Of a DNA stretch of 64,000 nt, positions 6,873 to 48,340 are shown piece by piece (position 1 is the first letter of the stretch; every line of letters begins with the position of its first letter). The stretch spans positions 1,240,001-1,304,000 of the forward strand of contig NC_134032.1 of the NCBI RefSeq assembly GCF_964204645.1, written 5' to 3'. The notes below the pieces were generated by a model. That model was given only the letters and a program-made list of their open reading frames with translations. It was not told the origin of the DNA and did no database searches. Source of the DNA: Tubulanus polymorphus (taxonomy: Eukaryota > Animalia > Nemertea). Position numbers and translations under genes: made by a program.

Positions 6873-8411
6873 ACGTTAGATTTCGACCGAAGTGGTCTGA
6901 ATAAAACGAAGAAATCAATAAAAGCCCTGTATAACTCGGGAAGTAGTAAGTACCAGTAACAGGAAGCAGCCCCTTTCCCCCTCCCTCTCCTCCCCCTCCT
7001 CCCCTCCTCCCCTGGTAACGCTGCAAACTGGGTTATCTTCTATATCCAGGTTCAGTATTTGTCTTCTATAGAAACCGTGTTAATTGGCCTCTTATAGTTC
7101 AAATATACGGTGTCAAATAGCTCGGTATTGGAAACTAATGTCTTCGGAATTGAAATGATTGTGGGTGACCCCTCGCTGGTTCTGCCGCCCGTGTCCCTCC
7201 CTGGCCGCGATGACTATCACCGTAACTATCAGTGTGGCTGTAAATATCCGCGTGTAACTATCTCACTGTGTAACTATCAGTGTGACTGTAACTATCAATG
7301 TGACTGTAACTATCAGTGTTGCTGTAACTATCAGTGTGACTGTAACTATCAGTGTTGCTGTAACTATCAGTGTGACTGTAACTATCACCGTGTAACTATC
7401 ACCATGTAACTATCAGTGTGACTGTAACTATCAATGATGCTGTAACTATCAGTGTTGCTGTAACTATCAGTGATGCTGTAACTATCAGTGTGACTGTAAC
7501 TATCACCATGTAACTATCACCGTGTAACTATCACCGTGTAACTATCACCATGTAACTATCAGTGTGACTGTAACTATCACCATGTAACTATCAGTGTGAC
7601 TGTAACTATCACCGTGTAACTATCACCGTGTAACTATCACCGTGTAACTATCACCATGTAACTATCAGTGTGACTGTAACTATCACCATGTAACTATCAC
7701 TGTGTAACTATCAGCGCGTAACTATCACCATGTAACTATCACCGTATAACTATCACCGTGTAACTATCACCGTGTAACTATCACCGTGTAACTATCAGTG
7801 TTTAACTATCTCCAAATGATGTTTGTTTCAGTGCATTTTACTAATGAGATGTACATGATCGAAAACCTGGAGAAACTCGGAGAAAATGCCAAAACTAAAG
7901 AGGCAGAAAGTGAAATCGGTAAAAAACTAAATCAAATATAGAATCTCCTCCATTCTCTATAGATAGAATCTCCTCCATTCTCTATAGATAAAATCTCCTC
8001 CATTCTCTATAGTTTATGTGCAGCTGCTGAATTCGTTTATATTTTTCAGGCGCTGCTTTTACTCAATTTGCGAAAGTCACCCGGGAACTGACGTTACTGA
8101 TGAAAACACTGGTAAACATTATACTCTACCTCATGATAATGTACCTCCGTAGACGAGGAGTTTAGATTCGATTTCGAATTTTGAAAAAAAAAGAAATCTG
8201 AGCACGTCACACCAACGTCGCGAGCTTTACGCCGGGTACCAATTTCTGTGTGGGGAAGGAGACAAAATTGCCTCAGATGCTCTCTGATTGGGCTTGTCAA
8301 ATCCAATTCAATTAAGACTCATTGCTACAGGCCTAATGGATTCCAATCGTGTTGTTTTGAATCAATGGATTTGGGCTGAGGAATCAATGACCAGAGATAC
8401 CCTCATGCTAA

Positions 8412-8478
<67 letters not shown>

Positions 8479-11400
8479 CACTATCACTATCACTATTACT
8501 ATTATTATTATTATTATTATTAATCATTAGATGCAGCATCTTCACAATATTGTGATGTTTCCGTTGGACTCGTTTCTGAAAGGCGACCTACGCGGTGTGA
8601 AAGGCGATATGAAAAAACCGTTCGATAAAGCGTGGAAGGATTACTTCGCGAAATTGTGAGTGATGACGTCGTTACTCCGCCGGCGACGACGGCTGCGTCC
8701 GATATTCCCTCTCTATGATATCGTCGATCTTTATAATTTCAGTCAGAAAATCGAGAAGGAGAAAAAGGCTCTAGCTCGCGAGTACGGCGGTATACGAACG
8801 GACGTCTCCGGACCCGAGGTAAGCCGATCGAAACCCCCCCCTCCCCAGAATAATTTCAACGTCAATTTGTAACAATTTCCCAGTCGGTGCAACTTTTTAT
8901 TATTAACAACGAATAAAACCCACAGTTACATCTGTACAAACAGTTTATTGCCTTACAGTTTCGAGGTTCAAACTAAACCGCATCATCAGAGGAACAAAAG
9001 ATACAATAAGCAAATAAATAAATGAAAATACAAAAAAGAGGTTTAGTTTTAACCTCGAAACTATAAGGAAATAAACGGTTTTTTCTACGGATCTAACTGT
9101 GAGTTAAAAGAATTTAAAAACAAGAATTTATTTATTCAATCTTAAATATATAGAATACGCGACTATATTAGATTAGAAAAAAATATAGAAAACGTCGTGT
9201 ATTCTATATATTTTAGATTGAATAAATAAATTCTTGTTTTTAAATTCTTTTAATCTGTAAATAGTGCGTTTTTATCTTATTATCCGTTCACAACGTTTGA
9301 GTGTGGTTATCGTTCTAACTGTGGGTTTCTATTCGTTAACTCTACGCTGAGATTTACATCAGTTCAAACTGCGGTCACTTTTTATCGTTAGTTTTTTGTT
9401 CAAAATTTGCTTCTAAACTTGCTCGAGGCCAACTTGCCGGAAAATAGAGCCAAGTTTTCAGGGGATCGGTGGCTTGATTAAAACTGGTCAAAAGCTGTTT
9501 CTCTTCGCATCTATTTATCGAGGGGCGAATTAACTAAAATTAAGCTCCCTGGCGTATGCGCCTTGTCCCCACTCCCTTCGATTGACAGGTTGCAGCGACA
9601 CCAGTTTCTATTATTCGTCGTTATTGTATCGGATGTTGATTTATTATTTACAGATCGCTGAAGAAATGGAGAAAGAGAGAAGAATATTACAGCTTCAAAT
9701 GTGCGAGGTACAGTCGTGAAACACTCTGAGTCCGTGTTGTTGTAAATCGCTGCACACTAAGAATAACAAGAGTCTGAAATGTTTCCTTGAGCTAGTGTAG
9801 TTTATTCAACGTTTCCACTATATCCTAATAGTCATCTTCAGGAATACTGTATTCCTTGAGCTAGTGTAGTTTATTCAACGTTTCCACTATATCCTAATAA
9901 TCATCTTCAGGAATACTGTATTCCTTGAGCTAGTGTAGTTTATTAGACGTTTCTACTATATCCTAATAGTCATCTTCAGGAATACTGTATTCCTTGAGCT
10001 AGTGTAGTTTATTCAACGTTTCGACTATATCCTAATAGTCATCTTCAGGAATACTGTATTCCTTGAGCTAGTGTAGTTTATTCAACGTTTCAACTATATC
10101 CTAATAGTCATCTTCAGGAATACTGATGTTTTCCTCATTATAACCATTGATGAAACACTCTGAGTCCGTGTTGTAAAGATAATATAAAATCCCTGCACAC
10201 TAAGAAGAAAAAGAGTCTGAAATGTTTCCTTGAGCTAGTGTAGTTTATTCAACGTTTCAACTATATCCTAATTAGTCATCTTCAGGAATACTGATGTAAT
10301 GAAATTATGAGATATATCAAACAATCTAGAACAAAGAGACTAATTGAGTTATGATCCAGTTGACTAAAACATTCAAAAGAAACTGAGTTATTTTCAAAAC
10401 AAATTTGACTTCACCCTATGAATATAATTCAGTTTGTTGATTTCTATTTATTCTGGTTGTCGGATGTTCAAATCATAAGTCGGCTGTCAATGAACTGATC
10501 TCACTGTATGTAAACATACACCTCCTCCCACCTAGAAACAGCTAACCATAACCCTAGCTTGTGATTGGCTGGAGCTGGTCACCTGATATATGCAAATAGC
10601 CCCAAGCACATGATCACTAACCCTAACCCTAGCTTGTGATTGGCTGCAGCTGGTCACGTTATATATGCAAATAGCCCCAAGCACATGACCGCTAACCCTA
10701 ACCCTAGCTTGTGATTGGCTGGAGCTGGTCATCTGATATATGCAAATAGCCCCAAGCACATGACCGCTAACCCTAACCCTAGCTTGTGATTGGCTGGAGC
10801 TGGTCACCTGATATATGCAAATAGCCCCAAGCACATGACCGCTAACCCTAACCCTAGCTTGTGATTGGCTGGAGCTGGTCACCTGATATATGCAAATAGC
10901 CCCAAGCACATGACCGCTAACCCTAACCCTAGCTTGTGATTGGCTGGAGCTGGTCACCTGATATATGCAAATAGCCCCAAGCACATGACCGCTAACCCTA
11001 ACCCTAGCTTGTGATTGGCTGGAGCTGGTCACCTGATATATGCAAATAGCCCCAAGCACATGACCGCTAACCCTAACCTTAGCTTGTGATTGGCTGGAGC
11101 TGGTCACCTGATATATGCAAATAACCCCAAGCACATGACCAGTAACCCTAACCCTTGCTTGTGATTGGCTGGAGCTGGTCACCTGATATATGCAAATAGC
11201 CCCAAGCACATGACCACTAACCCTAACCCTAGCTTGTGATTGGCTGGAGCTGGTCACCTGATATATGAAAATAGCCCCAAGCACATGGTCATTTACCCTA
11301 ACCCTAGCTTCTGATTGGCTGATATAAAATCCCTGCAAACTTAAATCTAGTATGCTCTCAAGTGAAGTTGAAATAGACATTAGCAGTTGATTCAATGTTT

Positions 11401-12628
11401 TTGACTATCTTATGCTAATTAAAGTCATCTTCAGAACAACTAGTGCTATACAGCATTCACTTTTCACCCATTCATTCGTCTATAGAGGGTATTTAGTTTC
11501 CTCGGGATGTTTTTTGATACACTTCCACGTACGGTTTTGATATTTGGTTTCTGTTTGTACCTACCCTAGCTGCAGAAACATTTATCAATTATCTTTCATC
11601 GATTGAGGATTGGTATGTATGTATGTATCCCCCTAACGGCCTAGTGCCTCGCTAGAAAAACTGAATTAACCGCAAACAAGTTACCACATTCAATGTTGTA
11701 GCTTATTTAACGAGTTCTGTGAAATTCAGATTTGAGACCACTTTTCAAGCGGGCACGATGTCCCAAGACCGCTAGTTTTTGTATGTAAACGTGGTTTCGC
11801 AACACTCGAAACTGTAGGATTAAATTTATTTTACTCCATCATTTTTTGTTTCAGTATTTGATTAAAGTGAATGAAATACAAACGAAAAAAGGAACAGAAT
11901 TTATCCAACATTTAGTGGAATATTACCAGGCACAGTGCAAGTGAGTAATGCAGGAGAGAGAGAGAGAGGGGGGGTTGCAGGGAGTAGTGTGTTGTACTGG
12001 GCTCACATGAGAGGGAGGAGGGGGTTGCAGGGAGTAGGGTGTTGTACTGGGCTCACAGGAGAGGGAGGAGGGGGGTTGCAGGGAGTAGTGTGTTGTACTG
12101 TGCTCACATGAGAGGGAGGAGGGGGGTTGTAGGGAGTAGTGTGTTGTACTGGGCTCACAGGAGAGGGAGGAGGGGGGTTGCAGGGAGTAGTGTGTTGTAG
12201 TGTGCTCACAGGAGAGGGAGGAGGGGGTTGCAGGGAGTAGGGTGTTGTACTGGGCTCACAGGAGAGGGAGGAGGGGGTTGCAGGGAGTAGGGTGTTGTAC
12301 TGTGTAGCAGGGTTGAGGAGGTTGGCACAGTGCAAGTGAGTAACGTATGAGGGCTGGTGATTGACAGGAAGGGTTGAAGGGTTGAAGAGAGGAGTCATCG
12401 GTTGTCACTAGTTCACGTTGATAATCCTCTCCCTCACTTATAGATCATTTCTTATTGATATTTCACAGTTATTTTCAAAGCGGCGTTCAACTGCTCACAG
12501 AACAGAACGCGTATATCGATGAACTCGGTGGTAGTTTGAATAAAGTGAAACATAGTCACGATCAGGAGCGTAGGAAACTGCTCGAACTGAGTGACGCCAT
12601 CAAAGGATCGTTAAGTAACTATAAAGAG
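6873..12628 (+). CDS. ASAP BAR-domain exons (8 exons)
   Basis: [23 protein letters not shown] / ..[21 protein letters not shown] / [38 protein letters not shown] / [15 protein letters not shown] / [10 protein letters not shown].. / [25 protein letters not shown]; colinear with the ASAP BAR domain as I recall it. Confidence 0.92.
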
Positions 12629-15600
12629 GTGAATATTGTTACAACATCTAGTTAATCAGAGGTTCTATTTGAACATGTAACATGACGGTTAACTGCATGT
12701 AAGATGCTAGTTAACTACATGTAACATGACGGTTAACTGCATGTAAGATGGCGGTTAACTACATGTAACATAACGGTTAACTGCATGTAAGATGGCGGTT
12801 AACTACATGTAACATGATGGTTAGCTGCATGTAAGATGGTGGTTAACTACATGTAACATGGCGGTTAGGTGCATGTAAGAAGGCGGTTAACTTCATGTAA
12901 CATGATGGTTAGCTGCATGTAAGATGGTTGTGAACTACATGTAACATGACGGTTTAATGCATGTAACATGGTGGTTAACTACATGTAACATGGTGGTTGC
13001 GTAGGTGATGCGTAACTGAGATTGTATTTTTCTGTATAATTCAAGATAAATCCGACATGTTTCCGTGGTTTTTCCGCCACATCAGTGAGTATTCTAAACA
13101 ATTCCGTAGCTGCGGCTGCTCCATGGTCTCAGTTTCAGCTGCAGCTGCAGCACGGTCTCCGTGTTTATGTCGTGATCCACCGTTTTACCCTTCAGTTTGT
13201 CATCATCAGATTTACATTCTTTCAGCACTACAAATTGCAATTCAAAGTTCAATATATGCCACTCAGTTTTTTTCTGCTGTTATTTTGAGGCACTATATTT
13301 TTAAATCCCTTAATATTCATTTACTTTCAAAGGATTTATATTTCTACAGATTCCGTTGTTGTTTTCAGGATGTACTTGTATTTCTATTCTCGTAGTAATT
13401 TTATTTCACTACGTGTGATGTTTGGATGTTTGAATGTGTTACCGGGTTCTTACAGATTAGTGAAAGTCGGGGAATCCCAGATTTATTTTTCTCTGCAGAG
13501 AAATCAGGGAATTGTGACTTTTTCAAAGAAAATTAACCCTTTCAGTGCTGACTAATAAATACCCTATAGTGCGGAAGATAATTTGAAAATTCTGAAGAAT
13601 TCCACCCTAGTGCGTTGATCCACCCTAGTGCGTTGAATAACAGGAATACCACCATAGGTGCAGTGTATCGTTAGTTACTAGTATTCCACTATATTTGACA
13701 GGTGCTGCCATCTTTCAAGAGAGATAATTAGTAATTACTAATTAAATCAATACACCGCAGTGCGGTGTACTAGCAAAATCCATCACTGATTGGTACACCG
13801 CACTGCGGTGTAGACGCACTGAAAGGGTTAAGGGAATATGAATTTTCGAGGTCAGCTGTGACCAATGGTCAGTGGCGCTGACGGCTGGGTGGTTACCTGC
13901 AAGCGTCTGTTCGTCGTCCAACAGTCACCTTCGTTATTTGCAGCCGCTTCAGAACAAAGATGCGTCCGGCGGCTACAATTTACATCAGTTGCAGGGAAAT
14001 AAGAAATACGGCTACGAGAAAGTGGGATATTTATTGAAGAAGAGCGAGGGTATGGTGAGAAAGGCGTGGCTTCGTCGTAAGATACTCGTTAAAAACGGAA
14101 TCATGAACATTTCCAGAGCAGACGTAAGTAGCTCGAACACCGTGAAGTTTTCTTTCGATAAGTCATCAGGGACCAGTTCTATAGTCATGGCTTAGACTTT
14201 GGACCAGTCTAAGACCAACTTAGTTCTATAGCTAATCTAACAACTTAAGACCAGTCTTAAGATTTAAGACCACTTTTGGTGGTCTTAAGTCTTGACTATG
14301 GAACCGGCCCCCACATCGCTAGTTTACTTAAGTCATCTATTGTTTTAGTCCTAACTTACAATTCTAATTCTGATGAAATCTCCCTGACCAAGTTTGTAGG
14401 ATACGGTATTATGGTTTTGGCTGTATGGCGTCTGCCACGCAAACATGGGTGGTTATTTTTTAGATGTCCGGGGAATGTGCATGAGTTCACATTAAGTCAT
14501 CACCGTAATCATGTGTATCTCATGACTTACGAGTCTCAATGACTTATAATCACTTAGAGCCTACGTATTGATAGAGTTATATGTTATATGTTTTGCAGGT
14601 AAATAAAGAACCGGTGAAACTAAATTTATTAACGTGCCAAGTGAAACTGGTTCCAGACGACGCCGGCAAAAAATGTTTCGACCTGATTTCTGGTTCACGT
14701 ATGTAAAACCTGATTTGTCCTTCATTGCCCCTTCCTCTCACTACTCCCCTCCCCTCCCCCTCACTACTCCCATATTGTTTATATAAATGACCTCATGATA
14801 ATGAATGAATTTGAAGCCTAATAATTTCTAGCCCACTTTGTCCATGCATATTTTTTACCACATTCAATTGCAAAATTGTAACTAGCAGCGTTATTACATC
14901 ATTGTGGGGATTTCTAAGATCATCAGTTTCTTGATAAGTGGCCACGGTTCGTTTCCCTGTAACCCTAGATTTTTGTTTTTTACATTTTAGAAAATCGTAC
15001 TTATCACTTCCAAGCAGACGACACAAAAGAGATGGAAGCGTAAGTGATGTAACTACGAGGAATAGGAGGGAGGGGGGCTGGTGCCATATCAGTTCAAACC
15101 GGGTGCCATCCAAAGTTTCCATTCAGTTAAAGCCGCGTTCACACTAGATTGGGCGCTTACGAAGTACCGTACTTCGCTGATGCCGAATTCACCAAAATAT
15201 GGCGCTTATACAGCCAGTTACGTTCACACTACGAGTCGGCAATTCGGCGCTTAGTAAAGTAGTCACCCGGTGTGCCGATAGAGGGCAGTGTAATTAGCGT
15301 TTAGTGTTTTGTACTACGAGGACGTGAATACGCGGCTAGCTAAGCGCTGAATCTGCGTTCAGACTACAGAAAATACGCGGCCAGCTCAATTCCGCGCTTA
15401 ATAAACCGCGTATTTCAGTACGGAACTGCATAAGCCGTGAATAGGCCTCGAATTATCTCCTAGTGTGAACGCTTAGTACCGTATTGAAATCCTAGTGTGA
15501 ATGCAGCTTAACCCTTTCAATGCTGACTAATTAATACCCTATAGTGCTGGAGATAATTTGAAAATTTTGAAAAATTCCGCCCTAGTGTGTTGAATAACGG

Positions 15601-18600
15601 GAATACCACTATAATGCGTCTACACCGCGGCGCAGTGTATCATTAGTTACTAATATTTCACTATGTTTGACAGATGCTGCCATCTTTCAATAGTGATAAA
15701 AACTAATTACTGATTACACCAATACACCGCAATGCGGTGTACTAGCAAAATCTATCACCGATTCATACACCGCACTGCAGTGTAGATGCACTGAAAGGGT
15801 TAAGTAGCGAAGGAACTTAGATATTTGAATACGATCTCTGTAAAACGCGGCCAGAAAAGTGTTAAAGACTCACACACCCTGAAGGTTACGAGGAGGGGCT
15901 GAAGGTTACGAGGAGGGGCTGAAGGTTACGAGGAGGGGCTGAAGGTTACGAGGAGGGGCTGAAGGTTACGAGGAGGGGCTGAAGGTTACGAGGAGGGGCT
16001 GAAGGTTACGAGTAGGGGCTGAAGTGGTGTATTTATTATTCCAGATGGATATCAGTATTAAACAACGCTAAAGAAGCCGTTCTACTGAAAGCCTTCGGTG
16101 ATTCGTGCGACGACGACAACAATCATATCAGTTTAACGGTGAAAGAGTTAACTCGTAGTATTATCCTAGAAATACGACGCATTCCTGGGAATCTCTATTG
16201 TTGCGACTGCGGCGCTTCAGGTCAGTGTAACCATAGCTATGGATGACAGACGTTACGATTGAATCAAAATCAAAGTAAACAATTTACTGAAAAGTTTGCA
16301 GAAAAACAAGTAGCATAAGACCCTGAAAGTATGTCCAATAATCTCTATTCAATATATAGACCCAAAAAGGATGTCCATAAAATCTCTGTTTGCTATTGTG
16401 TTTTAGACCCTGAATGGATGTCCACCAAACTCGGTGTTCTATTATGTTATAGACCCTGAATGGATGTCCACTAATCTCTTTTCGCTATTATGTTTAAGAC
16501 CCTGAATGGATGTCCACTAATCTCTTTTCGCTATTATGTTTAAGACCCTGAATGGATGTCCACTTATCTCGGTATACTATTATGTTATAGACCCTGAATG
16601 GATGTCCACTTATCTCGGTATACTATTATGTTATAGACCCTGAATGGATTTCCACTTATCTCGGTATACTATTATGTTATAGACCCTGAATGGATGTCCA
16701 CTAATCTCGGTATACTATTATGTTATAGACCCTGAATGGATGTCCACTAATCTCGGTATACTATTATGTCTGGAATGTTGCGGTATCCACCGGGAACTCG
16801 GAGTTCATATATCTAGAACTCAATCGATGGTTATTGATGATCTCGGAACCTCACAGTTACTCGTACGTCTCAATAAATCTATTTCTATTAACTGCTGCCA
16901 TCTACTTCCGATTGTAGCTGCCATCTACTTCCGATTGTAGCTGTCATCTACTTCCGATTGTAGCTGTCATCTACTTCCGATTGTAGCTGTCAACTACTTC
17001 CGATTGTAGCTGCCATCTACTTCCGATTGTAGCTGTCATCTACTCCCGATTGTAGCTGTCATCTACTTCCGATTGTAGCTGTCATCTACTTCCGATTGTA
17101 GCTGTCATCTACTTCGATTGACAGCTATTTTTTATTTTCATTGACAGCTCGCTCGAATGATCGGTAATAAGAGTTTTAATGATATCATGGAAGCAACTCT
17201 CGACCCTAAACTGAAACCGAAGCCTTCCAATGAAATGTAAGTCGTCGAATTCGAATTGTTTAACCGATATAAAGTTTTCAACTGGGTAAAATCTATAAGG
17301 AATCTGAATTGAATCTGAATGGAATCTGTACGGAATTTCTAGAACTCAAGAGAGAAAAGATTTCATCCAGAATAAATACGTGCGACATCGTTATGCGTAT
17401 AAAATGTGCACGAATTCAGACGAACTTCAACAAGATTTGAAACAAGCAATTCTCAGTATGGATATCTGTGCTTTACTGCAAGTGTTCGCCGAGGACGCGT
17501 TGTTAATGTGTAATCTACCCGATGTGGTAAGTGTAGTAGGGCAACGTAGGATTTATCGATGAGCGTCTGCCCTGATATCAGCCTAATGAAATTTGAGTAT
17601 CGCTTTATACTCATTGCGACACTTTTGTCGCAGCGAGCAATGAGGTACCGGCATATGCCTGGGCCCAGTTTCACGAAAAAGTTTAAGCCTAAAACGGTTA
17701 AGTTTGAATTGTTGTCCTCATTGAAAAGATGAAGTAACCAATGGCAATTACACCAAAAATTTGAGTTTAACTTTTTTGTGAAACTGGGCCCTGGGGTCAG
17801 TTGCTTAAAAGTTGGTTAAAACTTGGATAAAAACCATAGTAACTATGAAGTTTTAATTGTCACCACGTCAACTATCCACTGGTTAACTCTAACCAACCTT
17901 TGAGCAACTACAGCCCCTGATAAATACTATAGTAACAATGAAATTTTAATTGTCAATTTATCAACTAACCACTGGTTAAACTATAACCAACTTTTGAGCA
18001 ACTGCAGCCCCAGGGGCCGGTTCCATAGTCATGGCTTAGACTTAAGACCGGTCTAAGACCATCTTAGTTCTACAGCTAATCTAACAGTTTAAGACCAATC
18101 TTAAGATTTAAGACCACTTCTTGACTTAAGTCTTTACTATGGAACTGGCCCCAGATAAATATCATACTAGCAATGAACTGTTAATTGTCACCACATCAAC
18201 TATCTACTGGTTAACTATAACCAACTTTTGAGCAACTGCAGCCCCTGATGGCGTAACATTACACGCAGTTACGGTATACTTAATGAAAATTAGTTCATTT
18301 TCGATGAACTTTGAACTGGATTTTTAGGCTCGGAAAAGGAAATATTATCAAACAAGTCATCGAATAGATAAAAGATTGGCATCCCCAATGAGTGTATGAT
18401 ATACTTGTGTAGGTGGGCACGGTGTCTCTGGACCCCTAGTTTCACTATATTTCACCAATACACGACTGGCTTCAGGCATCAGCGTGGTAACTCGGGGGCA
18501 GCAGGGAGATGTGACTATATATACCGGTATATATTTTTAGGAATCTAATGAATCGGCCCTACACCTGGCTATAGAACAAGATGTCGATGGTTCCTCTTTA

Positions 18601-21600
18601 CACATTGTTGATTTCATTCTACAAAACGCGCAAGGGTTTGTACTCATCTATTACTCATTTTTACTCAATTTCTTATGGACTTGCTTCTGCGCGGCCATTT
18701 TGTCACCAGCTATCTCGGTGAATTGTTCGTTATGTCATTTTCATCATTCTGTTGTTCCAATAAATGACAACGTCTCATTAAAAGTTGACAAAGATGAAAA
18801 GTGAGTCCATTTTAACCCTTTCAGTGCTGACTTATTAATAGCCTATAGTGCTGAAGATAATTTGAAAATTTTGAAAAATTCCACCCTAGATTGTTGAATA
18901 ACGGGAATAGCACTATAGTGCGTCTACACCGCGGTGCGGTGTATCGTTAGTTACTAATATTTCACTATGTTTGACAGGTGCTGCCATCTTTCAATTGAGA
19001 TAAAAACTAATTACTAATTACATCAATACACCGCAGTGCGGTGTACTAGCGAAATCCATGACCGATTAATACACCGCACTGCGGTGTAGATGCACTGAAA
19101 GGGTTAAGGCTTGATATAATTCGATTAACTGTCATGATCATTGTTGTAGGAATTCGTTGGATAGAGTCGATCGCCATGGGAACACCGTATTACACGTATG
19201 CGCTCGGTATAATCGTACGGAATGTATGAAACTGGTTCTCCGCTCGCGACCTCAACTCGTACCGTTAGAGAACGCAAACGGGCAGACGGCGGCCGATATA
19301 TCCAGAGAGAATAACTCGGAAATCTGTTTAGAACTGGTGAGATCACTGTTTCAGAACTGCCAACTATTCCTCATTTTCAGTGTTTGTTACTACTTAATCA
19401 TAACAAGAGAAATACTGATTATATTTGTATGAAAATATGAAAGATGTTACTGAGGGTCTTACTGTTGATTACTGATTAATTTGAACAGAAATATGAAAGA
19501 TGTTACTGAAGGTCTTACTGTTGATTACTGATTAATTTGAACAGAAATATGAAACATGTTACTGAGGGTTTTACTGTTGATTACTGATTAATTTGAACAG
19601 AAATATGAAAGATGTTACTGAGGGTCTTACTGTTGATTACTGATTAATTTGAACAGAAATATGAAAGATGTTACTGAGGGTCTTACTGTTGATTACTGAT
19701 TAATTTGAACAGAAATATGAAAGATGTTACTGAGGGTCTTACTGTCGATTACTGATTAATTTGAACAGAAATATGAAAGATGTTACTGAGGGTCTTACTG
19801 TTGATTATTGATTAATTTGTACAGAAATATGAAAGATGTTACTGAGGGTCTTACTGTCGATTACCGAATAATTTTAACACTTTCATATTTCAATGAAATG
19901 TTACTGAAAAAAACTCAATTTGTTACTTATAGCACTTTTCAGAGGTTGGCAGCCCTGGTGTTTATTCATTTCCACAGTTTTTAAGGGCTCAGGTCAACAG
20001 TTCTTTAAGGCCCAGTCTCAATGGTTATTTTACCCTAACAGGCAATGTGGAATTATGTAACCGGAGGGTCTAGTAATCATATCGCTGTGTGTATATTGTA
20101 TTTTGTATTGTATATCTTGAGTTTTGTTTATTTCTAGTTGAAACACGCGAGTGAAAAGAGAACAGCAATATTCAATCACGTCAACATAGACTGGAATCTT
20201 ATAGAGGAGGATCATATTTACGATCCAGTCGATATGAGTGATGAGGAACTGGATGATAGAGGGGTAGGTAATAGATACGGGTACCAGTAGGTGATAGATA
20301 GGGGGGTAGGTGATAGAGGAGGGGGGCAGGTGATAGAGGAGGGGGGTAGGTGATATAGGGGGCAGGTGATATAGAGGGGGCAGGTGATAGAGGGGGCAGG
20401 TGATAGAGGGGGCAGGTGATAGAGAGGGGGCAGGCGATATAGAGGGGGGCAGGCGATATAGAGGGGGGCAGGTGATATAGAGGGGGCAGGTGATATAGAG
20501 GGGGCAGGTGATATAGAGGGGGGGGTAGATGATAGAGGAGGGGGTAGGTGATATAGAGGGGGGCAGGTGATAGAGAAGGGGGCAGGTGATAGAGAGGTGG
20601 CAGGTGATATAGAGGGGGGCAGGTGATATAGAGGGGGCAGGTGATAGAGAGGGGGCAGGTGATAGGGGGGGGGGGGGGGTAGATGATAGAGGAGGGGGTA
20701 GGTGATATAGAGGGGGGCAGGTGATATAGAGGGGGGCAGGTGATATAGAGGGGGGCAGGTGATAGAGAGGGGCGCAGGTGATAGAGAGGGGGTAGGTGAT
20801 ATAGGGGGGGGGGCAGGTGATATAGAGGGGGGCAGGTGATATAGAGGGGTAGGTGATATAGAAGGGGGCAGGTGATATAGAGGGGGGCAGGTGATAGAGA
20901 GGGGGGCAGTTGATATAGAGGGGGCAGGTGATATAGAGGGGGGCAGGTGATATAGAGGGGGGGCAGGTGATATAGAGGGGGGTGGTGTGGAGTCCAAAGA
21001 ATAACAAACCGAACAAACAACAATCCAGAAGCCCGACTATTTACCAGCACAAACCCAAAAAATGGAACTTGGAATTCTGAAGTTGGGGGTGGGCAAATCC
21101 AACAGATGGTGATAGAGGGGAAGTATGTAACTAAGTAAACTGTATTTATTATAGGTGACCCCCGAGAGGAAAACTAGGTCTCGTCCGTCCAGTATTGTAG
21201 GGTTGATAGATGTAGGAAGTATTACACCGGATGTCAAAATGTCACCGAGTCCGCAACATACAACACCAGCCGCAGCAGCAGCTGCGCTGAGAAATCAGAA
21301 ACGTGAGTAGTTATTCCCTCTCTTCCCTCATCCCTAACCCTCCCTTATGTCGTTACTTCTAGCTGTATATAACCCTAAGCATTAGTATTTTCTGTATAGA
21401 ATCTGTAAAGACTTCAGAAAAAAAATAGAAAAGGAGCAAAAATTGTTTGAATTGAATTCAAACGATTCGAGAAACAATGAAAAATAACGTCTTTGAAATC
21501 ATTTCTTTTATCCTGGGCAGTGGATCTCGACCCCAAGTAATCAAAAAACTCCTTTCTGTCGTTCATTATTTGGTTTAGGTCTCGTATTTATTCTGTGTGG

Positions 21601-24600
21601 TGATCGGTTTCTCTTTCTGTTTCAGCTCTCACTCCTTCTAGCTCAACGCCACCTTGTAGTTTCCTGCCGAATGCGCCACCTAGTGGTGGTGGTGGTGGTA
21701 ACTTCGTCATTAAGAAGAAGCCAGCTCCGCCTCCCCCACCGCCGAGAGTGCGTACGATTTCTAACTCGAGCACGCTTCAGAACGAACAACTTAAAACCCA
21801 CAGACGCACTCCTTCTGAACCTCCTAAACTACCCCCGAAAACACTACCAGCAGGTGAGCCTCCTAAACTACCCCCTAAAACACTACCAGCAGGTGAGCCT
21901 CTTAAACTACTCCCTAAACACAACCAGCAGGTGAGCCTCTTTAACTACTCCCTAAAACACTACCAGCAGGTGAGCCTCCTAAACTACTCCTGATAACACT
22001 ACCAGCAGGTGAGCCCCTAAACTACCCCCTAAAACACTACCAGCAGGTGAGCCTCCTAAACTACTCCTGATAACACTACCAGCAGGTGAGCCCCTAAACT
22101 ACCCCCTAAAACACTACCAGCAGGTGAGCCTCCTAAACTACCCCCTAAAACACTACCAGCAGGTGAGCCTCCTAAACTACCCCCTAAAACACTACCAGCA
22201 GGTGAGCCCCTAAACTACCCCCTAAAACACTACCAGCAGGTGAGCCCCTAAACTACCCCCTAAAACACTACCAGCAGGTGAGCCTCCTAAACTACCCCCT
22301 AAAACACTACCAGCAGGTGAGCCCCTAAACTACCCCCTAAAACACTACCAGCAGGTGAGCCCCTAAACTACCCCCTAAAACACTACCAGCAGGTGAGCCT
22401 CCTAAACTACCCCCTAAAACACTACCAGCAGGTGAGCCTCCTAAACTACTCCTGATAACACTACCAGCAGGTGAGCCTCCTAAACTACCCCCTAAAACAC
22501 TACCAGCAGGTGAGCCTCCTAAACTACTCCTGATAACACTACCAGCAGGTGAGCCCCCTAAACTACCCCCTAAAACACTACCAGCAGGTGAGCCTCCTAA
22601 ACTACTCCTGATAACACTACCAGCAGGTGAGCCCCTAAACTACCCCCTAAAACACTACCAGCAGGTGAGCCTCCTAAACTACTCCTGATAACACTACCAG
22701 CAGGTGAGCCTCCTAAACTACCCCCTAAAACACTACCAGCAGGTGAGCCTCCTAAACTACTCCTGATAACACTACCAGCAGGTGAGCCCCTAAACTACCC
22801 CCTAAAACACTACCAGCAGGTGAGCCTCCTAAACTACCCCCTAAAACACTACCAGCAGGTGAGCCCCTAAACTACCCCCTAAAACACTACCAGCAGGTGA
22901 GCCTCCTAAACTACCCCCTAAAACACTACCAGCAGGTGAGCCTCCTAAACTACTCCTGATAACACTACCAGCAGGTGAGCCTCCTAAACTACCCCCTAAA
23001 ACACTACCAGCAGGTGAGCCCCTAAACTACCCCCTAAAACACTACCAGCAGGTGAGCCTCCTAAACTACCCCCTAAAACACTACCAGCAGGTGAGCCTCC
23101 TAAACTACTCCTGATAACACTACCAGCAGGTGAGCCTCCTAAACTACTCCTGATAACACTACCAGCAGGTGAGCCTCCTAAACTACCCTCAAAATACCAC
23201 CAGCAGGTGAGCCCCTAAACTACCCCCTAAAACACTACCAGCAGGTGAGCCCCTAAACTACTCCTGATAACACTACCAGCAGGTGAGCCTCCTAAACTAC
23301 CCCCTAAAACACTACCAGCAGGTGAGCCTCCTAAACTACTCCTGATAACACTACCAGCAGGTGAGCCCCTAAACTACCCCCTAAAACACTACCAGCAGGT
23401 GAGCCCCTAAACTACCCCCTAAAACACTACCAGCAGGTGAGCCTCCTAAACTACTCCTGATAACACTACCAGCAGGTGAGCCCCTAAACTACCCCCTAAA
23501 ACACTACCAGCAGGTGAGCCTCCTAAACTACCCCCTAAAACACTACCAGCAGGTGAGCCTCCTAAACTACTCCTGATAACACTACCAGCAGGTGAGCCCC
23601 TAAACTACCCCCTAAAACACTACCAGCAGGTGAGCCTCCTAAACTACCCCCTAAAACACTACCAGCAGGTGAGCCTCTTTAACTACCCCCTAAAACACTA
23701 CCAGCAGGTGAGCCTCCTAAACTACTCCCTAAAACACTACCAGCAGGTGAGCCTCCTAAACTACCCTTAAAACACTACCAGCAGGTGAGCCCCTAAACTA
23801 CCCCCTAAAACACTACCAGCAGGTGAGCCTCCTAAACTACCCTCAAAATACCACCAGCAGGTGAGCCTCCTAAACTACCCCCTAAAACACTACCAGCAGG
23901 TGAGCCCCTAAACTACCCCCTAAAACACTACCAGCAGGTGAGCCTCCTAAACTACCCCCTAAAACACTACCAGCAGGTGAGCCTCCTAAACTACCCCCTA
24001 AAACACTACCAGCAGGTGAGCCTCCTAAACTACTCCCTAAAACACTACCAGCAGGTGAGCCTCCTAAACTACTCCTGATAACACTACCAGCAGGTGAGCC
24101 CCTAAACTACCCCCTAAAACACTACCAGCAGGTGAGCCTCCTAAACTACTCCTGATAACACTACCAGCAGGTGAGCCCCTAAACTACCCCCTAAAACACT
24201 ACCAGCAGGTGAGCCCCTAAACTACCCCCTAAAACACTACCAGCAGGTGAGCCTCCTAAACTACTCCTGATAACACTACCAGCAGGTGAGCCCCTAAACT
24301 ACCCCCTAAAACACTACCAGCAGGTGAGCCTCTTTAACTACTCCCTAAAACACTACCAGCAGGTGAGCCTCCTAAACTACTCCTGATAACACTACCAGCA
24401 GGTGAGCCTCCTAAACTACCCCCTAAAACACTACCAGCAGGTGAGCCTCCTAAACTACTCCTGATAACACTACCAGCAGGTGAGCCCCTAAACTACCCCC
24501 TAAAACACTACCAGCAGGTGAGCCTCCTAAACTACTCCTGATAACACTACCAGCAGGTGAGCCCCTAAACTACCCCCTAAAACACTACCAGCAGGTGAGC

Positions 24601-27600
24601 CTCCTAAACTACTCCTGATAACACTACCAGCAGGTGAGCCTCCTAAACTACCCCCTAAAACACTACCAGCAGGTGAGCCTCCTAAACTACTCCTGATAAC
24701 ACTACCAGCAGGTGAGCCTCCTAAACTACCCCCTAAAACACTACCAGCAGGTGAGCCTCCTAAACTACTCCCTAAAACACTACCAGCAGGTGAGCCTCCT
24801 AAACTACCCTCAAAATACCACCAGCAGGTGAGCCTCCTAAACTACCCCCTAAAACACTACCAGCAGGTGAGCCTCCTAAACTACTCCCTAAAACACTACC
24901 AGCAGGTGAGCCTCCTAAACTACTCCTGATAACACTACCAGCAGGTGAGCCTCCTAAACTACCCCCTAAAACACTACCAGCAGGTGAGCCTCCTAAACTA
25001 CTCCCTAAAACACTACCAGCAGGTGAGCCTCCTAAACTACTCCTGATAACACTACCAGCAGGTGAGCCCCTAAACTACCCCCTAAAACACTACCAGCAGG
25101 TGAGCCTCCTAAACTACTCCTGATAACACTACCAGCAGGTGAGCCTCCTAAACTACCCCCTAAAACACTACCAGCAGGTGAGCCTCTTTAACTACTCCCT
25201 AAAACACTACCAGCAGGTGAGCCTCCTAAACTACTCCTGATAACACTACCAGCAGGTGAGCCCCTAAACTACCCCCTAAAACACTACCAGCAGGTGAGCC
25301 TCCTAAACTACTCCCTAAAACACTACCAGCAGGTGAGCCCCTAAACTACCCCCTAAAACACTACCAGCAGGTGAGCCTCCTAAACTACTCCTGATAACAC
25401 TACCAGCAGGTGAGCCCCTAAACTACCCCCTAAAACACTACCAGCAGGTGAGCCTCCTAAACTACTCCTGATAACACTACCAGCAGGTGAGCCTCCTAAA
25501 CTACTCCTGATAACACTACCAGCAGGTGAGCCCCTAAACTACCCCCTAAAACACTACCAGCAGGTGAGCCTCCTAAACTACTCCTGATAACACTACCAGC
25601 AGGTGAGCCTCCTAAACTACCCCCTAAAACACTACCAGCAGGTGAGCCTCCTAAACTACTCCTGATAACACTACCAGCAGGTGAGCCCCTAAACTACCCC
25701 CTAAAACACTACCAGCAGGTGAGCCTCCTAAACTACTCCTGATAACACTACCAGCAGGTGAGCCCCTAAACTACCCCCTAAAACACTACCAGCAGGTGAG
25801 CCTCCTAAACTACTCCTGATAACACTACCAGCAGGTGAGCCTCCTAAACTACCCCCTAAAACACTACCAGCAGGTGAGCCTCTTTAACTACTCCCTAAAA
25901 CACTACCAGCAGGTGAGCCTCCTAAACTACTCCTGATAACACTACCAGCAGGTGAGCCCCTAAACTACCCCCTAAAACACTACCAGCAGGTGAGCCTCCT
26001 AAACTACTCCCTAAAACACTACCAGCAGGTGAGCCCCTAAACTACCCCCTAAAACACTACCAGCAGGTGAGCCTCCTAAACTACTCCTGATAACACTACC
26101 AGCAGGTGAGCCCCTAAACTACCCCCTAAAACACTACCAGCAGGTGAGCCTCCTAAACTACTCCTGATAACACTACCAGCAGGTGAGCCTCCTAAACTAC
26201 TCCTGATAACACTACCAGCAGGTGAGCCCCTAAACTACCCCCTAAAACACTACCAGCAGGTGAGCCTCCTAAACTACTCCTGATAACACTACCAGCAGGT
26301 GAGCCTCCTAAACTACCCCCTAAAACACTACCAGCAGGTGAGCCTCCTAAACTACTCCTGATAACACTACCAGCAGGTGAGCCCCTAAACTACCCCCTAA
26401 AACACTACCAGCAGGTGAGCCTCCTAAACTACTCCTGATAACACTACCAGCAGGTGAGCCCCTAAACTACCCCCTAAAACACTACCAGCAGGTGAGCCTC
26501 CTAAACTACTCCCTAAAACACTACCAGCAGGTGAGCCTCCTAAACTACTCCTGATAACACTACCAGCAGGTGAGCCCCTAAACTACCCCCTAAAACACTA
26601 CCAGCAGGTGAGCCTCCTAAACTACTCCTGATAACACTACCAGCAGGTGAGCCTCCTAAACTACCCCCTAAAACACTACCAGCAGGTGAGCCTCCTAAAC
26701 TACTCCTGATAACACTACCAGCAGGTGAGCCCCTAAACTACCCCCTAAAACACTACCAGCAGGTGAGCCTCCTAAACTACCCCCTAAAACACTACCAGCA
26801 GGTGAGCCCCTAAACTACTCCTGATAACACTACCAGCAGGTGAGCCTCCTAAACTACCCCCTAAAACACTACCAGCAGGTGAGCCTCCTAAACTACTCCT
26901 GATAACACTACCAGCAGGTGAGCCCCTAAACTACCCCCTAAAACACTACCAGCAGGTGAGCCTCCTAAACTACTCCTGATAACACTACCAGCAGGTGAGC
27001 CTCCTAAACTACTCCTGATAACACTACCAGCAGGTGAGCCTCCTAAACTACTCCTGATAACACTACCAGCAGGTGAGCCTCCTAAACTACTCCTGATAAC
27101 ACTACCAGCAGGTGAGCCCCTAAACTACCCCCTAAAACACTACCAGCAGGTGAGCCCCTAAACTACCCCCTAAAACACTACCAGCAGGTGAGCCTCCTAA
27201 ACTACTCCTGATAACACTACCAGCAGGTGAGCCTCCTAAACTACCCCCTAAAACACTACCAGCAGGTGAGCCTCTTTAACTACTCCCTAAAACACTACCA
27301 GCAGGTGAGCCTCCTAAACTACCCCCTAAAACACTACCAGCAGGTGAGCCTCCTAAACTACTCCTGATAACACTACCAGCAGGTGAGCCCCTAAACTACC
27401 CCCTAAAACACTACCAGCAGGTGAGCCTCCTAAACTACTCCTGATAACACTACCAGCAGGTGAGCCCCTAAACTACCCCCTAAAACACTACCAGCAGGTG
27501 AGCCTCCTAAACTACTCCTGATAACACTACCAGCAGGTGAGCCTCCTAAACTACTCCTGATAACACTACCAGCAGGTGAGCCCCTAAACTACCCCCTAAA

Positions 27601-30600
27601 ACACTACCAGCAGGTGAGCCTCCTAAACTACTCCTGATAACACTACCAGCAGGTGAGCCTCCTAAACTACCCCCTAAAACACTACCAGCAGGTGAGCCTC
27701 CTAAACTACTCCTGATAACACTACCAGCAGGTGAGCCCCTAAACTACCCCCTAAAACACTACCAGCAGGTGAGCCTCCTAAACTACTCCTGATAACACTA
27801 CCAGCAGGTGAGCCCCTAAACTACCCCCTAAAACACTACCAGCAGGTGAGCCTCCTAAACTACTCCCTAAAACACTACCAGCAGGTGAGCCTCCTAAACT
27901 ACTCCTGATAACACTACCAGCAGGTGAGCCCCTAAACTACCCCCTAAAACACTACCAGCAGGTGAGCCTCCTAAACTACTCCTGATAACACTACCAGCAG
28001 GTGAGCCTCCTAAACTACCCCCTAAAACACTACCAGCAGGTGAGCCTCCTAAACTACTCCTGATAACACTACCAGCAGGTGAGCCCCTAAACTACCCCCT
28101 AAAACACTACCAGCAGGTGAGCCTCCTAAACTACCCCCTAAAACACTACCAGCAGGTGAGCCCCTAAACTACTCCTGATAACACTACCAGCAGGTGAGCC
28201 TCCTAAACTACCCCCTAAAACACTACCAGCAGGTGAGCCTCCTAAACTACTCCTGATAACACTACCAGCAGGTGAGCCCCTAAACTACCCCCTAAAACAC
28301 TACCAGCAGGTGAGCCTCCTAAACTACTCCTGATAACACTACCAGCAGGTGAGCCTCCTAAACTACTCCTGATAACACTACCAGCAGGTGAGCCTCCTAA
28401 ACTACTCCTGATAACACTACCAGCAGGTGAGCCTCCTAAACTACTCCTGATAACACTACCAGCAGGTGAGCCCCTAAACTACCCCCTAAAACACTACCAG
28501 CAGGTGAGCCCCTAAACTACCCCCTAAAACACTACCAGCAGGTGAGCCTCCTAAACTACTCCTGATAACACTACCAGCAGGTGAGCCTCCTAAACTACCC
28601 CCTAAAACACTACCAGCAGGTGAGCCTCTTTAACTACTCCCTAAAACACTACCAGCAGGTGAGCCTCCTAAACTACCCCCTAAAACACTACCAGCAGGTG
28701 AGCCTCCTAAACTACTCCTGATAACACTACCAGCAGGTGAGCCCCTAAACTACCCCCTAAAACACTACCAGCAGGTGAGCCTCCTAAACTACCCCCTAAA
28801 ACACTACCAGCAGGTGAGCCTCCTAAACTACTACTGATAACACTACCAGCAGGTGAGCCCCTAAACTACCCCCTAAAACACTACCAGCAGGTGAGCCTCT
28901 TTAACTACTCCCTAAAACACTACCAGCAGGTGAGCCTCCTAAACTACCCCCTAAAACACTACCAGCAGGTGAGCCTCCTAAACTACCCCCTAAAACACTA
29001 CCAGCAGGTGAGCCTCCTAAACTACCCCCTAAAACACTACCAGCAGGTGAGCCTCCTAAACTACCCCCTAAAACACTACCAGCAGGTGAGCCTCCTAAAC
29101 TACCCCCTAAAACACTACCAGCAGGTGAGCCTCCTAAACTACCCCCTAAAACACTACCAGCAGGTGAGCCTCCTAAACTACCCCCTAAAACACTACCAGC
29201 AGGTGAGCCTCCTTAACTACTCCTGATAACACTACCAGCAGGTGAGCCCCCTAAACTACTCCTGATAACACTACCAGCAAGTGAGCCTCCTAAACTACTC
29301 CTGATAACACTACCAGCAGGTGAGCCCCCTAAACTACCCTCAAAATACCACCAGCAGGTGAGCCTCCTAAACTACTCCTGATAACACTACCAGCAGGTGA
29401 GCCCCCTAAACTACCCTCAAAATACCACCAGCAGGTGAGCCTCCTAAACTACTCCTGATAACACTACCAGCCGGTGAGCCTCCTAAACTACTCCTGATAA
29501 CACTACCAGCAGGTGAGCCTCCTAAACTACCCTCAAAATACCACCAGCAGGTGAGCCTCCTAAACTACCCTCAAAATACCACCAGCAGGTGAGCCTCCTA
29601 AACTGCCCTCAAAATACCACCAGCAAGTGAGCCTCCTAAACTACCCTCAAAATACCACCAGCAGGTGAGCCTCCTAAACTACCCTCAAAATACCACCAGC
29701 AGGTGAGCCTCCTAAACTACCCTCAAAATAGCGAGAGAATCTCAAACCATTCGTGACCCCTTAGAAAATTCTTGCATTATGCGTAAAAACCTGCTGTGAC
29801 CTCGGTCTCTGCTGGTTCTAAGTCTAACTGTTCTGTACATGTAAAAAGTCAGTAAGTTCCCTGACAAAGACTTTGGCTTCAGTTTGATGAAAGTAACATC
29901 GTGTAAATACAACCTCGGTGATAGTGGAGAAAAAATAATCCTGTCCCGTTAGTGCGTGCTCGGTGCAGCGGCCCGGCTTGTACCCCATGTCTATATATCT
30001 GTAGCTAGCTCGCACTACAGAGGTTGGAAATGTATTACTAGCTTTTCGATCCCCCGATTGTTTAAGGGGATTCTACTTTATATTTTGGAAGATCCTCCGC
30101 GCGTATTGTAAGCATAAATTTCTATTTTACAGGTGCTAAATTAGTTCTTCCTGTCGGAGTAAATGAGTAAGTTAGTTTTTCGAATCCGATGGTTCCGGCA
30201 GTACTTAGAATTTCGAAATGATATCGCTTTGGAAATATTAGGGAATTCGATTGATTTTCCTTTAATACAGGAAAATTTTGGAAATTAATTTGACGCTTCA
30301 CATTTAACCGAGGCTAAATTCTTTCTTGGCATTCTTTCTTGAAGATCGCCTTTATCACCCAGTCACTATTAGAATAGCGACATCCACGCGGTTCGATGGT
30401 ATGTTGTTCACTTTTACGAAGACCTCATTTCCGTATGGGAAAATGAAAAAATCAACCCTGTTGAAATGCTGCAGAAAATGTTTAGGAATTTCGAAATCCT
30501 GTAACTGTGGGAACCATGAAACTCAAACAATCTCTATCTCCATCTTTGAATGCTTTACTATGTTTATTATGTTTGTTTCAGAGCTCGAGTTCACAGACGG

Positions 30601-33600
30601 TCTCCGAGTGGTGGAGATTTCGGTCAGTTTCTGGTTTACGTTTAATTCGCTTCCTCTAAAACCCTTAATTCACTAAGGATATTTGTATCGAAACTAATCA
30701 ACGTCTGAACTCACAAATAAATTATCTCACATTTAATTTTTGATGCTAACCGCCCTTTTAATACACACCTTCCCCTCCCTCTCATCCCCGCGCCCATCTA
30801 ATCACCATTCAATCGGTATGATTTATGATATTTCAGTAACTGCGTTTAGAAAGCACCACCCGATTAAACATAGTTTATCAGTTGGTGAGTGACGCATGAA
30901 TTACATTCAACAACATTAACACACCTCGAAAAACCGATGTTACAGTAAACCACGCTCAAATCGGATATTTGGGGAATGGAAGATTTTCTCTGACTTAGAG
31001 AACTTGCATTTTTTGAAAAAGTCGGATTTTCAAGTTTATGTAAAAAAATAAGGCTTAACCCTTTCAGTGCGTCTACACCGCAGTGCGGTGTATAAATCAG
31101 TGATGGATTTTGCTAGTACACTGCACTGCGGTGTATTGATGTAATAAGTAATAAGTAAATATCTCTCTTGAAAGATGGCAGCACCTGTCAAACATAGTGA
31201 AATACTAGTAACTAACGATACACCGCGCCGCGGTGTAGACGCACTATAGTGGTATTCCCGTTATTCAACACACTAGGGTGTAATTTTTTTAAATTTTCAA
31301 ATTATCTCTAGCACTATAGGGTATTAACTAGTCAGCACTGAAAGGGTTAAATCGGATATTTGGGGAATGGAAGATTTTCTCTGGCTTAGAAAACTCGCAA
31401 CTTTGAAAAAATCGGATTTTCAAGCTTATGTAAAAAGAAACTAAGGCTTTTAAAAAAAACTGAGCTCATTTTTTGTGCCGTGTATCGACTCATTATTAAC
31501 AAGAGTGGGTAAGAAATTTGAGACTTCGGGATAGAAATTTATTTGTAAAGGAGAAGAATACAATGGGAGCAAACGTTTTGAACGTCTATCCGAAATACTG
31601 CGATCCGACTCGCGCGTGGTTCACTGTACGATATTCAAACTGCATGAATCAAATCATCTTCAAACATCGTTCGTCGTTTGTTGCGGTCGAAATATTTTCT
31701 GAAAAAAAAATATACAATCGACACGAATTCATTCACGTCGCGATTTATTTTCGTTTCAGATAATCGTTTAAGCTTATCGAACGGACAGTCGAGATCGATG
31801 GATTGCTTGAACTCGTCGACTGATTCTAGCAGCACGGATTGTAAACCGACCCCGGCTCCGCGACAAAAGGTGAATAACGTTCTCGTTTAAACTTTCGAAT
31901 TCGCCGAGGTCTATTGATAATTTATGACGAAGCGTTGTTTTATGTTGCTCTATTCAGATATATCGATTGTCCTCATTTCTGCAGGTAGAATTCGTGTTTC
32001 AACGACGGCCCAACACAAACAAAAAACATTGAAATACAGTCAACTTAGGTTAATCCATCCTCCCCCCTCCAGTAAATAGTTTAAGTAACAACAGATTCAG
32101 GCCTGAGCCCCAGGAGCCAGTTGCACAGTCGAGACTTAAGTCCAAAAGTGGTCTTAAATCATAAGACCGGTCTTAAATTGCTAGATTGGCTGAAGAACTA
32201 AGTCGGCCCTAGAACTAAGCCATGACTATGCAACCAGCCCAAGGAGCCGGTTCCATTGTCGAGACTTAAGTCGAAAAATGATCTTAAATCTTAAGACTGG
32301 TCTTAAGTTGTTAGATTGGCTATAGAATAAGCTATAGTTAGATTGGCTATCGCACTGTCTCCGGTGATACGGATTAACCGAGGTTGATTGTACTTGAATC
32401 TTTTCAACGAATTATTTCTACTACAGATTTCAGTGTAACTGTGTTGGGCTCGGATTGTTAATAATTTTATCCGTTGTTGCTTCCGTTCGATGGAGCATGT
32501 TTGTACGACCAGTGCAGGATTACTGAGTCAATAGCTGTGATTACAAGGCCACGGTCAGTCAAACTAGCCCGGTCCAGACTTGAGTCATATTTGGTCCGTG
32601 CCGAATCAGAGAGAGCGTGTATTCACGCGTAAATCGATCGCTTGTTACTAAAGCGATATCGAAAATATGCCGCGGCAAGTGAGGAGACTCGCTCCCAGAA
32701 CAAGTTCGCGTTAACGCGGAATGGTTTGACCCTTGCTAAAATATGGCACGGGTCGAACTAACAGGCGCAGACTTGCATCAGTGTAAAGAGCTCAGCTGGC
32801 ACGGGGCCGAGATCGCTTTATGACCACGGCTAATGACTTTCAGTGATCTATAATTTAGGTTTCAGAGTTAGGATGAAACCCAGCCCTCAGTAATTGAGCC
32901 CCCTCCCCCCTCCCCACCACCAGCAGTGTTGTATCGACATTTCTGTATGTAATTGTGTGTTGTATATTTGTTTATCTTACAGTTTACCGATGATTATGAA
33001 ACTTTGTTTCACAGACCGAAACCTGTCTATTTCAAGGTTCTATAAACGAATATAATGCTTTCAATTCACTTTTTCCCTGTCACTGTTTGAGGCCTGCTGT
33101 TTACACACAATCATAGTTCTTACTCATTATTCAATCTCCAGGGCCGTACACCTAGCGTTTGAATTTTGGGAGGGCAGAAAAACCCGAAAAGGGCAGTTTT
33201 ATGGACTAACAATAATATTTGTACAAAAGGCAATTTTCAGAAATTTCTGGGGGTTACTGCCCCCTGGTAAATACGGCCCTGAATTCTCGGGATGTCTCGG
33301 ACTGGAGGGCTATTGTGTTCAGTTTTTACCCACCCATATCTCAGCAAACGAGTCTTATGCGGGGTATAACCCAAGGCATCCCCCCCCCCCCGATTAGGTT
33401 CAGCCCTTAGGCTGGGGGGGTGTCCTGCTTGAATGTATAGATCATGTACACTAATTATTTATGTTATTATGTATTACACATTTGAGAAAATATATTCATT
33501 CATTCGACTCCGATTTCAAGTCAGACATATTTTGCTAGATAGACGAGTAGTACTGTGATATTACTCTTTGATCAATTGTTAGATTGTCACGCATTTCACC

Positions 33601-46825: not shown

Positions 46826-48340
46826 ATGGAGGGAACAGGCCGCGTTATGACACTTGCCTCCTGTAGCAGCACCCCCAGTGAAATGCAGCCTTCTTCAATC
46901 AGCAGAATCGACTGCAGCTTCACTCAACAACCACCAGCAGCAAACTCTAATAAATGGCATCACCACAACAATAATAGTGATCTCGTCAATTTCAATGAAG
47001 GTGTGTTACTACTAAATACTACTGTTTAAAGCTCCAGCCAATCACAGGCAAATTATCCACTTCCTTCACTTTTCTAAAATTTAAGTATTTCAATATTATT
47101 TTGCAATCACAATCAATTGCAAAACGTGTTCCAAAATTGTGGTGAGTTTCAGTCATTGGCTTCAGTATATGTTCACCAGGGGGCGTTGAATATCGAAATT
47201 GTCAGATAGTTGAGCATTTCAAACCAAGCGTCCCCAAGGACCCGTAGTTTGATACATCCCGAGGTTCCATTCCGAAAAACATTATCTGACTGTTTGATAT
47301 TTCCAGCAGGTTGCGATAAATCGGCGGACAGCGGAGGAGGAGGAGGAGCGACGATGAAACAGAGGAGCCACTTCTGTACGGTGTGCGATAAGTCGTTTAA
47401 CTGGAGGAGTAATTTAAAGGAGCACTTGGCGTCGCACACGAACTATCGTCCGTTTAACTGTCGTCTGTGCGGTAAATGTTTCAACCGAAGCGGTAATTTA
47501 AACCGTCACATGTTGTCGCACACGGCGAATAAACCGTTCAGCTGCGCGACGTGCGCCAAATCGTTCTCGCGCAAGTGTCTACTAACGGCGCACGAGTTTC
47601 GGCACACGGGCGCGCGCCCGTTCGAGTGCGACGTGTGCCACGCCGCGTTCAAACAGAAGGCGCACATGAACGACCACCGACGCGGTCACTTCGCCGAGAA
47701 GTTCGCGTGCGATTACTGCGCGAAGAGTTACACGCGTCGGTGGCAGTTAAACGCGCACATGAAAGTGCACACGGACGAGACGGGCGTCGTGCCGCACACG
47801 TGCGCCGTGTGCCGCGCTGAATTCGCGTACGTCTGCCTGAAAAACGCGCACGTCTCGGCGGAGCACGGCGACACCGCGAACTCGTTCGAAACTGACTTAC
47901 CGGTGAATAAAACGACAGCGGCTGGTGCGGAGAGGCGGTACAGCTGCAGGTGCGGCGTGTGCGGGATGCAGTTCGGTCGTTTGTTCCAATTAGAGAAACA
48001 CCTGGCGTTCCATCGGAAGTGCGACGCCTGGAAACGCGGCGTCGAGTTCACCGAGGGCGAATACGTCGGTAAACTGACGCGACGCGAGAAATATGGAAAC
48101 CTACACGATAAACACGCTCGACACGCGTGCGACGTGTGCGGTCGCAGATTTCACCGCCCGTACCGATTACGACGCCACCTAGCGACGCATCGTCGTACTA
48201 CCGCCGTCGATTTAACAACCGCGAAGTTTCATGACGCGGGTAAAATCACAATGGCGAATGACTCTACGGTTGTTTATGATAGTAATGACCTGGAATCAAA
48301 AGGTGAACTCTCAGAAATAGAAGACGCACTACTGACGTGA
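46826..48340 (+). CDS. C2H2 zinc-finger protein (~8 fingers), Kruppel-type
   Basis: The ORF at 47210-48340 holds CxxC..H..H fingers with HT.xx.PF linkers. Probable exon 46826-47000 (GAAG|gtgtgt, phase 1) joins a NAGNAG acceptor ttcCAG/CAG at 47307/47310 in frame. The start codon is uncertain. Confidence 0.85.

Follow-up and report, generated by a model that had tools for sequence, protein, structure and literature searches.

Four introns of one gene in Tubulanus polymorphus carry repeats copied from their own exon boundaries, which raises the question of whether splice junctions are preferentially duplicated, or whether short duplications arise everywhere and are sorted by selection. The window analyzed here is a stretch of 64,000 nucleotides (C8:1,240,001-1,304,000) of a 268-Mb assembly, with the chromosome end 1.2 Mb away. 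Tandem repeats make up 37% of the window, compared with about 4% of 68 gene-anchored loci elsewhere in the genome. The features are listed in Table 1.

Table 1. Genes, junction repeats and related arrays (window positions, except for the last three rows, which are numbered within their own loci).
Feature	Position	Strand	Evidence
Predicted ASAP-type ArfGAP gene, BAR-PH-ArfGap-Ank-Pro-rich-SH3	6873..35269	+	25 exons modeled, exon-wise Pfam, RNA contigs
Case (i), exon end and true donor, intron from 11941	11929..11948	+	
51-bp x 6.8 intronic minisatellite between the case (i) copies	11958..12302	+	
Case (i) decoy, exact 20-bp copy of exon end and donor, 395 bp downstream	12324..12343	+	
Case (ii), 46-bp acceptor and exon-start array, 9 upstream decoy acceptors, true acceptor 16729	16315..16769	+	
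ArfGap zinc-finger exon	16729..16862	+	RNA joins exon ending 16220 to it (X2 contig 9); Pfam
23-bp x 10 intronic array just upstream of acceptor 17148, weak decoy acceptors (2-3 vs 7.1)	16894..17147	+	
Case (iii), donor 20264 and 19-bp x 37 junction-derived array	20255..20985	+	
Case (iv), 39/38-bp x 204 exon-end and donor array, true donor 21854	21816..29722	+	
Ras/Rab-like GTPase gene	40920-44950	-	
C2H2 zinc-finger protein gene, single exon	47210-48340	+	
Small gene, start resembles signal peptide	56640-57760	-	
OAF gene	59085-62265	+	
126-bp perfect duplication across OAF stop codon (TAA 62263-62265)	62170-62423	+	
Donor-spanning tandem duplication, 117-bp unit, ArfGAP gene	L007 2501-2723	+	
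Donor-spanning tandem duplication, 70-bp unit, myosin gene	L033 1612-1772	+	
Donor-spanning tandem duplication, 78-bp unit, kinesin gene	L066 2620-2765	+	

Junction-derived repeats in the ASAP-type gene

The gene was modeled with a self-trained exon finder followed by manual fixes, and its 5' end was not located. When spliced and checked for frame, the 25-exon model comprises 2829 nt with one stop, which is terminal. In scans of single exons against Pfam, ArfGap (1e-14), Ank and SH3 were above the cut-offs, the BAR match was weak, and the PH exons gave no match. The domains recovered in this way are consistent with an ArfGAP of the ASAP (centaurin-beta) type. The introns are short, with a median of 214 nt. 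Of the two runs used, X1 consists of DNA differing from the assembly, and X2 was taken as RNA from its behavior, its contigs skipping introns. Wherever the modeled exons are covered, RNA contigs connect them. Both runs carry a 9-nt in-frame insertion (three alanines) at 21271 relative to the assembly, which is a polyalanine length polymorphism in ASAP.

In case (i), a 20-nt direct repeat made of 12 exon and 8 intron nucleotides is exact at 11929 and 12324, and the donors of both copies score 5.7. It is a two-copy dispersed repeat and not a tandem one. The earlier note had described this junction as duplicated around a minisatellite; the duplication of the exon end and donor holds, but the 51-bp array between the copies is not derived from the junction. 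A transposon insertion with target-site duplication was rejected, as a search with the 51-bp array, which skips simple and very common words, gave no close dispersed copies and only 67-69% matches on one scaffold. Analogues of case (i) lying wholly within introns of the same gene are found at 9717/10151 and 30958/31349. Around the first (9717-10300), a segment is doubled 434 bp apart and a 69-bp array has grown in the first copy. Around the second (30958-31383), a 35-bp direct repeat stands on both sides of a ~290-bp inverted-repeat element, whose family also occurs at ~13536, 15511, 18815, 34497, 41497, and 60960.

The acceptor array of case (ii) is reported by TRF as 46-bp x 9 (16355-16769), and contains 10 AG/ACCC sites once degenerate distal copies are included. 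Its unit joins 5 nt of the acceptor to 41 nt of the ArfGap exon start, and the units become less like the exon copy with distance, matching it at 46/46 positions beside the exon and at 24-31/46 in the distal part. The true acceptor scores 5.3 and seven upstream decoys 5.0-6.9, two distal decoys are degraded, and every decoy acceptor leads to a stop within 14-45 codons. Case (iii) is a diverged, purine-rich, low-complexity copy of its junction, and is the weakest case because of the low complexity of its unit. TRF places the first unit 25 nt beyond donor 20264, which has the highest score (5.8, decoys at most 4.9). In the DNA run X1, 24 nt at 20278, the start of this array, are absent relative to the assembly, so that the array adjoins the donor in that haplotype. 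This indel may reflect a length polymorphism between haplotypes, the contigs giving no copy numbers.

Case (iv) is by far the largest, as the array (39-bp x 204.5 by TRF) occupies 7.9 kb of an 8.3-kb intron. Among its 204 donors, 201 have a score equal to that of the true donor. The units fall into 17 distinct types with a higher-order arrangement, and a genome search with the 39-bp unit gave no match at other loci. The junction-derived repeats claimed for four ASAP introns are therefore real, case (iii) being present in diverged form. The fifth case, described as spanning the OAF stop codon, was confirmed as a perfect duplication, but its 126-bp unit contains no splice junction.

The length and near-identity of these arrays, and the 100% identity of the OAF duplication, might point to artifacts of assembly. 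However, the 17 ordered unit types in case (iv) and the divergence gradient in case (ii) argue against such an origin, and the depth of X1, a DNA run differing from the assembly, is elevated over arrays (ii), (iii), and (iv). An artifact is thus hardly credible.

Arrays near the junction cases have other sources, among them dispersed repeats, intron sequence away from any junction, and the region of a stop codon. The 56-bp array at 19413-19879, with a depth of ~40,000 compared with ~25 in X1, was amplified out of part of a very abundant dispersed repeat, other copies of which omit most units. The arrays at 42141-43912 (64-bp) and 45297-45758 (44-bp) repeat the end of a small inverted-repeat element, of which a single copy lies at ~2562-2670. 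In addition, 74-76 bp arrays in opposite orientations surround an inverted-repeat segment (50500-51050) at 50192-51750. An 88-bp x 13 array at 1064-2330 starts within an open frame of 70 codons on the forward strand (53 codons on the reverse strand). It is a possible further exon-edge case; a putative exon beneath the array (1185-2330) gave no Pfam match and no good exon model.

Splice-site choice among decoy sites

The RNA contigs show which sites are used. In X2 contig 9 (depth 88), the exon ending at 16220 is followed directly by 16729, and 89 nt absent from the listed pieces of the contig equal the length of exon 17148-17236. For case (iv), X2 contig 13 (depth 143) exits at the first donor, and the rest of the contig is as long as the next two modeled exons together (34 + 41 nt). 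In case (iii), the X2 bin depth ends at the true donor 20264. The X2 depth is zero across most of arrays (ii) and (iii), and a nearby unspliced piece has a depth of 5.7. According to the X2 contigs and their listed joints, the exon-proximal site is used and all decoys are skipped in cases (ii), (iii), and (iv), with low decoy use being possible because contigs drop rare forms and a further 285 joints lie outside the listing. This agrees with the earlier suggestion that the splicing system tolerates decoys by picking the exon-proximal site, a behavior that was already known (PMC1557585, PMC3087553).

Case (iv) has also to be considered as a functional variable-length coding or alternative-donor cassette that adds 13-residue proline-rich units to ASAP. 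The 39-bp unit corresponds to 13 codons, donor 2 (21893) keeps the frame, and vertebrate ASAP1 has PPKP-type repeats. However, donor 3 is out of frame, the spacing is 39 bp in 135 instances and 38 bp in 68 (68/203), and some units contain stops. The exit of the RNA contig at the first donor, followed by no more than the length of the next two exons, also speaks against a cassette, as does the sole RNA contig within the array, which has the downstream-unit variant at 21872 and fits collapsed intron reads. Such a cassette is very improbable. A plain coding VNTR was rejected on the grounds that a third of the spacings are 38 bp and that the RNA exits at the first donor.

For the donors, we infer a first-site choice, which may work on a first-come basis or through exon definition, as in human F7. 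Products of the decoy acceptors may be removed by nonsense-mediated decay, as their early stops suggest. With regard to acceptor choice in case (ii), the motif CTAAT at -25 of the true acceptor 16729 comes from exon codons in the copy before it, and within 16407-16729 the true acceptor alone combines this motif with YAG. The decoys have CTTAT, CCAAA or ATAAA, or an AAG end, and both decoys with CTAAT end in AAG, which is found in 6% of introns in this genome. A branch-motif explanation of the choice is post hoc and weak, because CTTAT also satisfies the loose yUnAy consensus, these introns show no more than a mild enrichment of the motif, and the copies do not count as independent.

Arrays at junctions and within introns

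The frequency of junction arrays was assessed in an independent sample of 48 multi-exon loci (myosin, kinesin, and ArfGAP genes) selected regardless of repeats, with 550 junctions and 127 kb once arrays were collapsed to one unit. The exons were self-modeled, and 241 of the 429 predicted in these loci had paralog support. Arrays with a period of at least 10 were counted, and all data together comprise 46 arrays in ~0.14 Mb of collapsed sequence, a small sample consisting mostly of interstitial motor-protein genes.

The independent loci contained 25 intronic arrays, 3 junction-spanning arrays, and 1 exonic array. Junction-spanning arrays among the 28 non-exonic ones were thus 3, compared with 5.1 expected from locus-specific or 6.0 from pooled rates, and the junction:intron rate ratio was 0.49 (95% CI 0.11-1.54). 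Exonic arrays were depleted in the 48 loci (1 vs 8.0 expected under uniform placement). In ASAP alone, 3 of 17 arrays are junction-spanning, where 1.35 would be expected (P = 0.14; ratio 2.7, CI 0.6-8.8), and all data give 6 against 6.4 expected (ratio 0.91, CI 0.33-2.16). Intronic arrays showed no pull to intron edges, their positions being uniform (KS P = 0.91). Taken simply as repeats, the junction cases all far exceed chance, while the number at junctions is within chance. The earlier note had proposed a genome-wide mechanism that amplifies exon borders, and had fixed beforehand enrichment over minisatellite density as the decisive comparison; no enrichment was found in the 48 loci. A splice-junction-targeting mechanism is not supported.

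Four junction cases in one gene, the ASAP-only ratio of 2.7, and the three further donor cases in L007, L033, and L066 would be in line with a splicing- or transcription-coupled process (e.g., R-loops or breaks at exon borders) that preferentially seeds duplications at junctions. However, ASAP is the gene of discovery, and its P is 0.14; the ratio of 0.49 in the independent loci has an upper bound of 1.54; the exon share of the units ranges from 12 to ~45 nt with no common geometry; and intronic arrays lack an edge bias. Taken together, preferential seeding at junctions is improbable, and a modest mutational bias could be masked by selection against junction copies. Donor and acceptor cases stand at 6:1 (P = 0.06), and no acceptor case was found in the independent loci against 2.5 expected. 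That donor copies are better tolerated than acceptor copies is a post hoc reading and a weak lead.

Probable random duplication and its precedents

The pattern is very probably explained by frequent local tandem duplication together with selection against the copies that break the mRNA. The alternative raised in the earlier note, that junction-spanning copies survive since the mRNA stays intact, is the best fit. Toward the chromosome end, the local rate of tandem duplication would be high, copying whatever short sequence is present, possibly through slippage or repair with microhomology, and the arrays would grow by ordinary minisatellite turnover through unequal exchange and conversion. Because the introns are short (median ~210 nt), units of 20-120 bp often overlap an exon edge by chance. 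Copies entirely within exons would mostly be purged by selection; those straddling a junction would survive, since they leave one exon and its site intact, in the first copy for donors and in the last for acceptors. A considerably less likely reading is that junction arrays are random in origin and asymmetric in fate, downstream donor copies being neutral even at 204 identical sites, and upstream acceptor copies being rarer and persisting only with weakened decoys.

The repeats had also been put forward as the best candidate for an undescribed system, which does not hold, as there are precedents in amphioxus mirages (PMC3087553) and human minisatellites (PMC1557585). Mirages are tandemly duplicated exon-intron boundaries in amphioxus globin, TnC, and PGBD5 genes that leave splicing undisturbed (PMC3087553, PMC3902484); Adh3, as mentioned in PMC3087553, also has mirage minisatellites, with somatic instability. 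Similarly, the unit here contains an exon edge and a splice site (clear in cases ii and iv, diverged in iii) and comes from the host gene (the 39-bp unit is locus-specific, and the 46-bp unit codes for the beginning of the ArfGap exon), and the authentic site is spliced despite decoys (cases ii-iv, X2 contigs 9 and 13). The genome is a different one, and case (iv) has 204 copies, whereas the globin mirages BflGb6/9 have 3-6 (PMC3087553, PMC3902484).

Human junction-spanning minisatellites are known from F7 IVS7 (37 bp), CBS intron 13, LMNB2 (100 bp), and IFI6, with 10-25 copies in the examples for which counts are given (PMC1557585). As in our donor arrays, their first unit spans the donor and identical pseudo-donors follow. 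First-site choice among identical donors was experimentally shown for F7; the most upstream site is used in F7 and LMNB2, and the next pseudo-sites are used too in CBS and IFI6 (PMC1557585), which was not seen here in the contigs. In contrast to these donor minisatellites, case (ii) is an acceptor array, and the 204 copies of case (iv) are above both the human counts and the amphioxus examples (PMC3087553, PMC3902484, PMC1557585). Intron gain by tandem genomic duplication, as outlined in PMC4974935 and PMC3443670, likewise involves a duplicated segment that holds a splice signal. However, compared with that outline, existing introns grow here and no new intron or exon is seen.

Our results provide a measured null, in which short introns and a high local duplication rate give junction repeats without a special system. 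With its 204 donors, the intron of case (iv) puts first-site donor choice to an extreme natural test, and an array-rich genome of this kind could be used to measure how splicing tolerance differs between donor and acceptor decoys.
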